Made by a program: the position numbers and the translations under genes. Positions 29,896-47,385 of a stretch of DNA of 64,000 bases are shown here, one piece after another. Source of the stretch: Macrostomum lignano. Its lineage: Eukaryota. Numbering within the stretch: position 1 is the stretch's first letter; every line of letters starts with the position of its first letter. Location: contig NIVC01000001.1 of the NCBI GenBank assembly GCA_002269645.1, positions 1,736,001 through 1,800,000 on the forward strand, given 5' to 3'. A model generated the notes under the pieces. It was given only the letters and a program-made list of their open reading frames with translations. It did no database searches and had not been told where the DNA came from.

Positions 29896-32800
29896 ATGGT
29901 AACCGATGCCTTGCCTACAGTGTATCACATTGAATCCCTTTTCCCTCCACCAATACTAAATGCCTCATTGGACGGTTGCTCGCCTTGAGACTCAGTGCTT
30001 GTTCGCTTTAGCCGGATAACTCTAAATAAATGAATGTAAAAAATCATAATTATCTGCAGTTATTAGTAGCCAAGTACAGAATGTAGGTATCGCTGTGTTC
30101 GTTTTCATTGGATTGGAGTTTAATGCATGCAGCTAGGCATAAGTTTGAATTCTTTCTTTTGTAGGATTCACCGCCACCCTTCTCAGACCCTCAGTTGCTG
30201 GGCCAGCTTCTCAGATCCCCAGTTGCTAGGCCAGCCTCCCCGATCCTCAGTTGCTGGGCCATCCGCTCAGATCCTCAGTTGCTGGGCCAGCTTCTCAGAT
30301 CCCCAGTTGCTAGGCCAGCCTCCCCGATCCTCAGTTGCTGGGCCATCCGCTCAGATCCTCAGTTGCTAGGCCAGCTTCTCAGATCCTCAGTTGCTGGGCC
30401 AGCTTCTCAGATCCTCAGTTGCTGGGCCAGCTTCTCAGAATCTCAGTTGCTGGGCCAGCCTCCCAGATCCTCAGTTGCTAGGCCAGCTTCTCAGATCTTC
30501 AATTGCTAGGCCAGCCTCCCAGAGTGTCAGTTGCTTCAGATCCCAGCCTCACAGCCTCCCCGATCCTCAGTTGCTGGGCCATCCGCTCAGATCCTCAGTT
30601 GCTGGGCAAGCTTCTCAGATCCCCAGTTGCTAGGCCAGCCTCCCCGATCCTCAGTTGCTGGGCCATCCGCTCAGATCCTCAGTTGCTGGGCCAGCCTCCC
30701 AGATCCTCAGTTGCTAGGCCAGCTTCTCTGATCTTCAGTTGCTAGGCCAGCCTCCCAGAGTGTCAGTTGCTTCAGATCCCAGCCTCACAGCCTCCCCGAT
30801 CCTCAGTTGCTGGGCCATCCGCTCAGATCCTCAGTTGCTGGGCCAGCTTCTCAGATCCTCAGTTGCTGGGCCAGCTTCTCAGATCCTCAGTTGCTGGGCC
30901 AGCTTCTCAGATCCTCAGTTGCTAGGCCAGCTTCTCAGATCCTCAGTTGCTGGGCCAGCTTCTCAGATCCTCAGTTGCTGGGCCAGCTTCTCAGATCCTC
31001 AGTTGCTGGGCCAGCTTCTCAGATCCTCAGTTGCTAGGCCAGCTTCTCAGATCCTCAGTTGCTGGGCCAGCTTCTCAGATCCTCAGTTGCTGGGCCAGCT
31101 TCTCAGATCCTCAGTTGCTGGGCCAGCTTCTCAGATCCTCAGTTGCTGGGCCATCCGCTCAGATCCTCAGTTGCTGGGCCAGCTTCCCAGATCCTCAGTT
31201 GCTAGGCCAGCTTCTCAGATCCTCAGTTGCTAGGCCAGCTTCTCAGATCCTCAGTTGCTGGGCCAGCTTCTCAGATCCTCAGTTGCTGGGCCAGCTTCTC
31301 AGATCCTCAGTTGCTGGGCCATCCGCTCAGATCCTCAGTTGCTGGGCCAGCCTCCCAGAGTGTCAGTTGCTTCAGATCCCAGCCTCACACAGCCTCCCAG
31401 ATCCTGTTGCTGGGCTACAGACGCTACCCTATTCCCTATAGCGTTAGCAATCGCACAAATTTCAGGCTACTCAACAGCACCAGCAGCCGGCTCAGCAGCC
31501 ACATTTGCCCACCTCGGTCTCAACTCCATCACTGGGCGGCTCAGACTCATTACTGCTCCTATCCGAAGGCTTCGTCGCACCGGTTCGCCTAAAAAATGGT
31601 GGCGAATATCGCCTCGCAGAAATCCTCAGCCGTCGGGAGATTCCAGTCTCGCCGTCCTCCGGCGGCGGCAACGCGGACTCCAGCTTAGTGATGTACTATG
31701 TGCACTTCGAAGATTTCAACAAGCGACTGGACGAGTGGGTGTCCGCCGATAGGATCGACTTCACTGGAATCCAGCCGCCAAGAGTGCGACCTCCGGGCAG
31801 CGGCGGCAGCGTCAGCGGTGGCGGCGGCATCGCAGGCGGAAACGGGATGGCGAATCCGGTGCCTGGCGAGCGGCGCTCTGTGCTTGGCGCCGCTGAAACT
31901 GGCGTCGGCGCGGCCTCGACTGCGGCCTCCTCAGTTGTCGGTGTTGCCGACTCGGTTTCTAACAGTCGGGCAGGCACGCCGGATTCTACAGCCTCCGGCG
32001 GGCCTCATCATCATCATAATCATCATCAGCATCCGTTATTAAATAAGAAACGGCCCTACAGTGCTATCTGCCTAGCAGACTCTGGCGTTGACCAATCGGA
32101 AGATGAAGCATCCGCAGCCTCCTCGGCCGCCGTTGTCGGCACTGCGTCAGCCAATGGCGGTCCGCCTCTGCCGCCGCCCCGTCAGACTGGCAGCATGGCG
32201 CACAATCACGACGACAACAAGGTGATGCGAATGAAGAATATCGAATGGATTGAGCTGGGCCGCTACCGCATCAAGCCCTGGTACTTTTCGCCTTATCCAG
32301 TAGAATTGACCAAAGTGGCGTGCGTGTACCTGTGCGAATTCTGCTTGAAGTATCTGAAGTCTGTCACCTGTCTGCGCAGGCATCTGACAAAGTGCCAGCT
32401 GCGGCATCCGCCTGGCAATGAGATTTATCGGCGACAGAATCTCAGCTTCTTTGAGATTGACGGCAGAAAAAATAAGGCAAGTTTTTAAGACTCTATTTCA
32501 CTCAGTGCTCCTGGAATTCAACCCTGTGTTGGAATCCCCCACTTATCACCATTAGAACCACTCTCCCCACCATTAGAACCTCTCTCCCCCCACCGTGGAA
32601 CCCCTCTCTCCCCCACCATTAGAACCCCTTTACCTCTCCACCATCAGAACCCCTCTCTGTCTCTCCGCACCATTAAGAACCCCTCTCTCAATTCTCACTA
32701 TAAGAACCGCCCCTCAGAGTCGCTATTTGATTGGCTGATTAACCATAAGAACCGCCCCTCAGAGTCGCTATTTGATTGGCTGATTAACCATAAGAACCGC

Positions 32801-45199: not shown

Positions 45200-47385
45200 A
45201 TGAGTAATGCTAATTTGGGATTTGTCTACCAGCTATAGCTAAACTATCACTCCTCTGCAGTCTGCTATCACAGGCGACGACAGTAAAGTCCTAGCCAACG
45301 TGCTGGACATTCAACCGGAAGTGGTACCGGATGCCGAGTTTGCTACCTACTTTGATCTGTCTGGTACAGTTGAATTCATTAGGAATTTGCTATTGGCTAA
45401 AGCAAAACCTCAGGCAGCTGAGAAACAACAGCCACCTATTACTGTTGTTGTCGGTCTCCAGCTGCCATCGCCTCTGTTTCACTATGCCAAACGGCTTGTT
45501 AACGAATTAACTAGCCTACTCAAAGCCGCAGCTGATGAAGACGAGCAGGTCAAGTTGGCTGGCTCTGTGCAGCTTCGCCTGCTGGCAGACACTGACAGCT
45601 GTTGCGTTGACTGCGTCACGGCTGCTCACTGCGGCTGCTCCGCCGTTATTCACTACGGCGACGCCTGTTTCAGCCGGTGTCCTCACCTGTCCGTGCACTA
45701 CGTTCTCGGTTGCTATGGCAACCAGTCAGCTGCCGGCCGGGCTGTGTCTGAGAAACTAGCCGAGACTATTCTGTCTACAGTGCTTGCCGGGCAAGACTGC
45801 CCCGGTAAATTGTTGTTAGTAGCGCCGGGCGCTCTGCATGCCTCTGTGTTGCTAGCCGCGCGTGACTGTCTGGTTGCTAAGCAACCGTCTATTGATGTTT
45901 ATTTAGCAACGCCGAATCCTCTAGCTGGCGAGGCCGATCGAATCGAAGGCGCCGCTCGGTTTCTATGCGGTCGCTGGGTGCCCGAGCCGTTTTTTAACAA
46001 CAGCGATGAAAATCCAACTAGTCGAGTTATAGTTCACGTTACCACGGACGCCGACTCGTTGCTAGGGCTAGCCGTGGCTTTAGCGTTCCTAGATATCGGG
46101 CCAGTGTACCAGTGCGTGTGCCAGCCCGGCGACTCGGCAATAAAACTCGATCGAATCGACACCAACCGCCGGTTTAAACGCCGAATGCTTCTGAGCAGCA
46201 AAGCCGCCGAGGCCAGGCGGATTGGCCTGCTAGTCTGCGGCTGCGTGGACTCGCTGACGCCCACCCTGGACTACGCACTTGGCCTGGTCCGCTCGGCCGG
46301 CCGCGTGCCCTACATTGTTAGCGTTGGCCGGATCAACCCGGCCAAGCTGGCTAACTACGCTGATATCGATGCATTTGCTCTGATTGGTTGTTACCTGCGA
46401 GCTCTGCTGGACTCCAGAGATTATTTCCAGCCACTGCTGTCTATGGTTGAACTTGAGCGAGCTCTCAATCCCAATCGGCAATTTGCCTACGCTTATAACG
46501 TCGACTTCTCCGACTGTCTGCCCGGCGGCCGGGACTTTGTTGAGCCGCCGTTTCCGGCTGCGGGACCTGCCGGAGATGGAGACGGAGAGAGCGGGGCCGA
46601 AGGGCAGGTGAGGGTTGCGGTGTGGGCGTGCTTGTTGTGTTTAAGACGCCATAAGCCTTCCAGATCCTCAGTTGCTGGGCGAGTCTCCCAGATCCTCAGT
46701 TGCTGGGCCACCTTCCCAGATCCTCAGTTGCTGAGCCACCTTCCCAGGTCCTCAGTTGCTGGGCCACCTTCCCAGATCCTCAGTTGCTGAGCCACCTTCC
46801 CAGGTCCTCAGTTGCTGGGCCACCTTCCCAGGTCCTCAGTTGCTGGGCGAGCCTCCCAGATCTCCAGTTGCTGGGCCACCCTCCCAGATCCTCAGTTGCG
46901 GGGCCAGCCTCCCAGATCCTCAGTTGCTGGGCCAGCCTCCCAGATCCTCAGTTGCTGGGCCAGCCTCCCAGATCCTCAGTTGCTGGGCCACCTTCCCAGA
47001 TCCTCAGTTGCTGGGCCAGCTTCCCAGAGTGTCAATTGCTGGGCCAGCCTCCCAGATCCTCAGTTGCTGGGCCAGCTTCCCAGAGTGTCAATTGCTGGGC
47101 CAGCCTCCCAAATTTCCAGTCGCTTGGCCGGGGCCATCCTCTCAGATGCCCAATATCCCAAGACGTGTCCAGCACACGCAGAATCCCCAATCGCCCCATT
47201 TGCAGCAGCTGGTGCTGCGCAACGGCAATCTGCAGGTGGCGCTGCCGGCTGGCAACTTCCTGTCCGGCCGGAGCTGGCGCGGCCTGGACCCGCAGCTCGG
47301 CGCCACCCCGGTAGCCCAGCTAGAGAAAGGTCGCAGCGGCCTGGCCATCAGATACGACTCGGAGGATGCTGATAACGCGAAATAA
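45200..47385 (+). CDS. DPH2: Diphthamide biosynthesis protein 2; exons 45200-45203 (putative), 45274-46607, 47206-47385
   Basis: VGLQLPSPLF, LLADTDSCCVDCVTAAHCGCSAVIHYGDAC, VGRINPAKLANYADIDAFALIGC, and the DPH2-type C terminus RSWRGLDPQLGATPVAQLEKGRSGLAIRY. Phase-0 intron 46608-47205. First exon is inferred. Confidence 0.9.
46650..47110. repeat. 28-bp minisatellite filling the last DPH2 intron
   Basis: Unit CTTCCCAGATCCTCAGTTGCTGGGCCA(C/G); same family as the KAT5 array. Confidence 0.93.

Follow-up and report, generated by a model that had tools for sequence, protein, structure and literature searches.

The window analysed here is a 64-kb stretch of Macrostomum lignano DNA (contig NIVC01000001.1, assembly GCA_002269645.1), and its DPH2 and KAT5 exons are 97% and 97 to 99% identical, respectively, to M. 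lignano proteins. The gene annotation was taken from locus L002, which belongs to the same contig and is 100% identical to positions 26715-47431 of the window. All annotated genes lie on the plus strand: the ELL gene, which ends at 26839, the 5'-partial KAT5 gene (from about 31469), a PRELI gene (36715-37431), a gene encoding 688 amino acids (40875-44123), and DPH2 (45261-47385). Two arrays of a 28-bp minisatellite, here called arrays A and B, lie 16 kb apart, upstream of KAT5 and inside DPH2, which are unrelated host genes. The comparisons described below show that the two arrays share ancestry and were not generated independently. For part of the region a second genome copy is available. Locus L001 (contig NIVC01004608.1) corresponds to window positions 21651-42747 and is colinear with them and 90 to 96% identical (about 90% in noncoding DNA), as would be expected because the M. 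lignano genome is partly duplicated (PMC5730564).

Two related arrays beside KAT5 and within DPH2

Array A (30179-31371, plus strand) has the main unit TTGCTGGGCCAGCTTCTCAGATCCTCAG and was found by Tandem Repeats Finder (TRF) with a period of 28 and 41.8 copies. With the units set out in register, it includes a module of one variant unit (..CCCAGAGTGTCAG) and an odd 40-bp unit (TTGCTTCAGATCCCAGCCTCACAG..) at 30503-30570 on the plus strand. This module recurs at 30739-30806, which gives a higher-order period of 236 bp, and again at the 3' end of the array (31339-31406). A degenerate 3' tail follows at 31372-31415 (plus strand), and the same terminal structure is present in L001 at 9853-9930. 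Array A ends about 95 bp upstream of the acceptor tttcag/GCT at 31465/31466, whose AG (31464-31465, plus strand) opens the first KAT5 coding exon (about 31466-32480). This exon has no in-frame ATG, and its start codon presumably comes from a spliced leader. In M. lignano 39% of the genes are trans-spliced (PMC5730564), and the Macrostomum spliced leader probably ends in ATG (PMC10468722). Given this background, and because the exon follows tttcag directly and lacks an ATG, array A probably lies in an outron, that is, in sequence that is spliced out upstream of a trans-splice-type acceptor. A reading made earlier from the sequence alone (the sequence-only reading) had put the array in a KAT5 intron. 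That placement has to be corrected, as array A lies in the ELL-KAT5 spacer, upstream of the annotated gene, and a KAT5 intron is not demonstrated there. The two genome copies differ at this acceptor: where the window has tttCAG/GCTACT (31463-31465) before the KAT5 coding exon, L001 reads ttcATGGCTACT at 9992-9994, so that the genome itself encodes an in-frame ATG at precisely the position of the one expected from the spliced leader. The two KAT5 copies may get their start codon in different ways.

Array B (46654-47110, plus strand; TRF period 28, 16.3 copies) is composed of units of the form TTGCTGGGCCA(G/C)C(C/T)TCCCAGATCCTCAG. The same reading had assigned this array to a DPH2 intron, and here it was right: the M. 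lignano protein P0001 joins ...GAEGQ/QLVLRNG across the last DPH2 intron (46608-47205, plus strand), which proves a 598-bp, phase 0, GT..AG intron with array B inside it. The array makes up 457 of these 598 bp (76%). Near its 3' end are two variant units (..CCCAGAGTGTCAA) at 47008-47035 and 47064-47091 on the plus strand, and degenerate units form the 3' edge (47111-47150, plus strand). Within this edge, GGCCATCCTCTCAGAT (47132-47147) is identical to one of the unit types found in the L001 array upstream of KAT5. The splice dinucleotides of the intron (GT and AG) do not belong to array B and lie 46 bp and 95 bp away from it. We considered an introner-like element as the source of array B and rejected it, because the splice sites lie outside the array and the array is not the whole intron. 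At the other end of the gene, DPH2 starts directly after an AG acceptor, ctctgcag/TCTGCT (45258-45262), with an in-frame stop just upstream and no ATG, which is consistent with donation of its start codon by the spliced leader.

Both arrays consist of head-to-tail units within the 10- to 100-bp range of minisatellites, and for array A the copy number varies between the homologous genome copies. The TRF consensuses of A and B are rotations of each other. The 22-mer CAGATCCTCAGTTGCTGGGCCA, with three mismatches or fewer allowed, has 53 matches in the window, all of them on the plus strand and inside arrays A and B, while shuffled sequences give an expectation of 0. The same 28-bp unit is thus present in both arrays in the same orientation, as had been claimed. 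The variant CCCAGAGTGTCARTTGCT occurs exactly five times in the window (0 expected), at 30518, 30754, and 31354 in its G form and at 47023 and 47079 in its A form; these sites are within a few bases of the positions at which the rarer variant CCCAGAGTGTCA(G/A)TTGCT had been noticed in both arrays. In addition, the unit TTGCTGGGCCAGCCTCCCAGATCCTCAG is identical at 28 of 28 positions in array A (30447, 30683) and array B (46924, 46952, 47036), and it is the main unit of the 3' half of B. The variant AGAGTGTCA is distinguished by three adjacent substitutions that convert TCC to GTG. Array A has three copies of it, array B two, and the L001 array ten, located in each case towards the 3' end; in array A, all three GTG variants are followed by the odd 40-bp unit. 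A third unit type, GGCCATCC(G/T)CTCAGAT, is present eight times in A and once, in degenerate form, at the 3' edge of B (47132-47147).

Together, the identical unit, the three-adjacent-base variant, and the third unit type show that A and B have a common origin. The three shared unit types also suggest that what was transferred was a block of at least three units that were already heterogeneous. The statement that slippage in two separate places would not recreate both the unit and its variant is borne out as far as homology is concerned, and it gains from the third type, which is also shared. Independent origin from similar short seeds is highly improbable: several other arrays of the window do share a C-rich core, CAGCCTCCC/CCCAGATCC, which could be a common seed motif, but they share only this core, and convergence could not yield a 28/28 unit, a three-base variant, and a third type (our rough estimate is well below 1e-3). 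Equally improbable is an independent origin followed by continuing gene conversion that made the two arrays alike. Continuing conversion is contradicted by private variants that were amplified separately, GCTTCTCAG and TAGG in A and CACCTTCCCAG and CAGGTCC in B. At the level of sequence, these private variants show that each array has homogenized its own variants independently and that there was no recent jump between A and B.

A wider and older family

The family is not limited to the two loci in which it had been recognized. Arrays A and B stand as members, and the first intron array to be added is a 29-bp array in an ELL intron (24184-24684, plus strand), about 6 kb upstream of array A. When its unit, ATGCTCAGCCAGAATCCCAGATCCTCATG, is aligned with that of array B, 23 of 29 positions agree and there is one 1-nt indel; the alignment score of 16 compares with a shuffle maximum of 8. 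The next ELL intron contains a more distant relative, a 30-bp array (25672-26517, plus strand) that shares the 19-mer core CAGCATCCCGGATCCCCAT. A possible distant relative is the 28-bp array that fills the first intron of a tetratricopeptide repeat (TPR) gene (52099-52963, plus strand) and shares AGCCTCCCAAATC. The motif CAGNNTCCCRGATCCYCA is common to the arrays at 24184, 25672, 30179, and 46654. A further member comes from P0122 (UniRef A0A1I8J1R5), an ARL3-like M. lignano gene model in which an exon reads on into the translated unit (28 residues). The ARL part of P0122 has no match in the window, so this member must be located elsewhere in the genome. When the translated array was compared with 1.84 billion protein representatives, P0122 was the sole true relative, and the other 40 matches were unrelated repeat proteins. 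The sense strand of the array is open in all frames. Scans of metagenomes gave 0 matches and then one chance 20-mer match in a nonrepetitive contig, and our literature search returned no paper on the unit sequence. The unit is not predicted to form hairpins or cruciforms any more readily than shuffled sequences (z = 0.14).

In pairwise BLAST of 400-bp flanks and in local alignments, no significant similarity turned up between the sequences next to A, to B, and to their relatives, in agreement with the earlier observation that the flanks of A and B are unrelated. A segmental duplication as the source of the two arrays was rejected on the same grounds, since there are no homologous flanks beyond the arrays and the host genes are unrelated. 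With further members and unrelated flanks, the unit is not restricted to two loci within one duplicated segment, which would have spoken against the reading of a copied array. Arrays A and B, the 29-bp ELL array, and the ARL3-like array are one M. lignano minisatellite family, dispersed among unrelated flanks.

The second genome copy gives an indication of age. L001 carries 19.5 units of the array A family (9373-9927) at the orthologous place upstream of KAT5, versus about 42 in the window. This array shares the 5' flank and the terminal structure with array A, and it is here that the GTG variant has been amplified to its 10 units. Because the same site is occupied in both copies, the comparison shows that array A was in place before the two genome copies diverged, and the copying is old, not recent. 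The dating concerns array A only, as L001 ends before DPH2 and array B. All other arrays of the region covered by L001 are likewise present there, with positions kept and copy numbers widely different, for example 16.8 versus 43.8 units. In the KAT5 intron, a 45-bp array has 28 units in the window versus 2.3 in L001, and a 21-bp array has 6 versus 31. A shared 5' boundary 'CGCCA' of A and B was also considered and was dropped, as the L001 orthologue reads CTGTCA at that place.

Other repeats of the window

About 40% of this gene-dense 64-kb window consists of tandem arrays, versus the 15% that tandem and simple repeats together make up in the M. lignano assembly (PMC5730564). Nearly all introns and spacers contain an array of their own, and in the second genome copy the position of these arrays is kept and their copy number is not. 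There is a second local family, composed of A-rich 23-bp arrays with the related units AAACATTAAAGAGCCACCATGTC and AAAAAATCATAGAAGCGTCATGT. Its arrays (7598-9985, 11910-12515, 14027-18049, and 18264-18326) are all on one strand and unrelated to the 28-bp family, and they are interrupted by an unrelated array of 62 18-bp units (10047-11154).

The 45-bp array of the KAT5 intron (32700-33973) reaches the 3' splice site (..CCGCCCAG/GC, about 33973). As its unit contains CCCCTCAG, the acceptor of this intron may be contributed by the degenerate unit at the end of the array. Interstitial telomere-like repeats are present at 18884-18910, 26967-27204, and 28321-28453; they consist of TTAGGG runs and 10 copies of a 23-bp derivative, GTTAGGGTTACGGCTACGGTTTG, and this derivative is conserved in the second genome copy. 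Just downstream of DPH2 there is a 3-kb (TAGA)n microsatellite of about 750 copies (48602-51593). Inside the long open reading frame of the 688-amino-acid gene, an array of 17 36-bp units (41123-41749) codes for a 12-residue repeat (SKVPPSGDAAET-like). It has 14 copies in L001, and because it lies within the reading frame and differs in copy number between the genome copies, this array is a coding minisatellite. Rfam families and tRNAs were not found in the window.

Origin of the arrays and known parallels

How could an array have reached a second gene? No terminal inverted repeats (TIRs) or target site duplications (TSDs) scored above shuffles, either within 150 bp of A or B or when the 3.3 kb upstream of A were searched against the 94 bp that follow it. 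The TIR test is valid in this genome, as it detects a real TIR element at 37764-39443 with a score of 60 versus a null maximum of 30. This element is a 1,680-bp insertion that is absent from L001 (empty site at about 15843). Its TIRs are 35 nt long (CCCGTGTGGCCATCCGATCAGGTTTTTCGCCCGGT, 94% identical), and there is what looks like a 2-bp TG duplication; inside the element lies a minisatellite of eight 61-bp units (38679-39168). The element is a recently moved nonautonomous DNA transposon with a tandem array. Transposon-borne arrays exist here, and judged by their sequence, A and B do not look like one. The earlier remark that no TIR or TSD is evident thus holds with a test that is positive on a control element, and transposon ends flanking both arrays, or a non-repeat flank shared by them, were not found either.

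It could still be argued that a DNA transposon, either a Helitron-like element or one like the miniature inverted-repeat transposable elements (MITEs), contributed the arrays as its internal tandem-repeat region and that its non-repeat ends have since eroded or been lost. The element just described, with its eight 61-bp units, shows that such a structure exists in this genome. We nevertheless find this explanation quite unlikely. Arrays A and B and the ELL array share no flank, no TIR or TSD is visible within 150 bp, and the 46 and 95 bp of non-array DNA left in the DPH2 intron are unrelated to the flanks of A. Moreover, with noncoding DNA still about 90% identical between the genome copies, a 35-nt TIR of the age of array A should still be recognizable.

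The related arrays lie close together, at 24184, 25672, 30179, 46654, and 52099, and all are on one strand. We therefore favor short-range templated copying of a multi-unit block followed by independent expansion, with a probability of roughly 0.5. The reasons are the clustered, co-oriented relatives, the second 23-bp family, which behaves alike, and the fact that neither flanks nor transposon ends travelled with the arrays. According to this explanation, an existing array would have been the source of a DNA-level copy that spanned three or more units (about 84 bp or longer) already differing from one another. The copy would have inserted into another spliced-out segment close by, with its orientation kept and no flanking DNA carried along. 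Most probably this would have happened at a break or a stalled fork, through template switching or ectopic repair synthesis that used the neighboring array as the template. The seed would then have grown by slippage and unequal exchange. No function would be required. The arrays would be tolerated on account of their location in spliced-out sequence.

Several points weigh against short-range copying or limit it. For the number, position, and orientation of the members, the DNA compared was the window and no more than about 40 kb from elsewhere in M. lignano. The ARL3-like member is outside the window, which means that dispersal was not purely local, and the same orientation is based on three to five arrays only. 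Arrays A and B are seen as filled sites only. Finally, a transposon with a different minisatellite is present in the same window, so that for old events a vehicle with eroded ends is possible.

The clustering itself could also be due to chance if the family were very abundant genome-wide, as two or three members in 64 kb would then be nothing special. The share of tandem and simple repeats (15% of the assembly, 40% of the window) and the ARL3-like member elsewhere are in line with this. Two indirect arguments make it unlikely in our view. With all sense frames open, only one protein with the translated unit, P0122, turned up among the 1.84 billion representatives, and the similarity pattern among the neighboring arrays fits local descent.

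Alternatively, arrays may excise as extrachromosomal circles by recombination within the array and reenter the genome at breaks, where they would seed a new array without flank or TSD. Such reintegration of circles has been suggested to explain satellite arrays in the euchromatin of Drosophila and humans. It would account for the unrelated flanks and the absence of TIRs and TSDs, for the transfer of several units at once, and for a copy at the distant ARL3-like locus. From circles one would expect insertion in either orientation and at any place, whereas the relatives found here lie within about 28 kb and on one strand, although the arrays are few. Circles are conceivable, but we hold them to be a doubtful source of A and B.

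If short-range copying did take place, one may ask how common it is. We can only speculate, with little confidence, that short-range, orientation-preserving seeding of minisatellites between neighboring spliced-out segments is routine in M. lignano, and such a process might run via an RNA or splicing intermediate. If it were routine, gene-dense regions would fill with locally related arrays; here, 40% of the window is array, with two independent local families. Inflation of introns by array seeding would then be a genome-shaping mechanism distinct from transposition. Apart from this, at least part of the very high tandem-repeat load of M. lignano, which has hampered the assembly of the genome of this regeneration model, lies inside and between housekeeping genes, and its arrays form families that are related by descent and have dispersed with no transposon visible. 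Should the local, co-oriented pattern prove to be genome-wide, M. lignano would be a tractable system for studying de novo seeding of minisatellites, and its duplicated genome copies would provide built-in comparisons of filled and empty sites.

Dispersed satellite arrays in euchromatin are known from the Drosophila 1.688 family, from Tribolium TCAST, and from human euchromatic alpha-satellite, families for which circle or repair mechanisms have been proposed. The M. lignano family resembles these in having short arrays at several gene-rich sites, often intronic, with unrelated flanks and no transposon ends, and in the drift of each array in copy number and variants. It differs from them in unit length (28 bp versus 170 to 360 bp) and in the tight clustering and common orientation of its members, and no long heterochromatic parent array is known for it. 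The hypervariable minisatellites of vertebrates (the core families of Jeffreys) are another parallel, as many of them share a short core. The M. lignano arrays likewise share CAGNNTCCCRGATCCYCA and are highly variable in copy number between the genome copies, but A and B have the whole unit and its variants in common and not just a core, and their core, which is C-rich on the sense strand, has no sequence relationship to that of vertebrates. Tandem repeats can also be transposon-borne, as in bivalves, where satellite arrays are found inside MITEs or Helitrons; elements of this kind transport entire arrays into introns. The element at 37764-39443, in the same window and with a different unit, is comparable to these, whereas A and B are without TIRs, TSDs, or shared non-repeat sequence. 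Seen next to these systems, the M. lignano arrays are genuine but not very unusual: they are a well-documented example of a tandem-repeat family that spreads through gene-rich DNA, a phenomenon that is already known.

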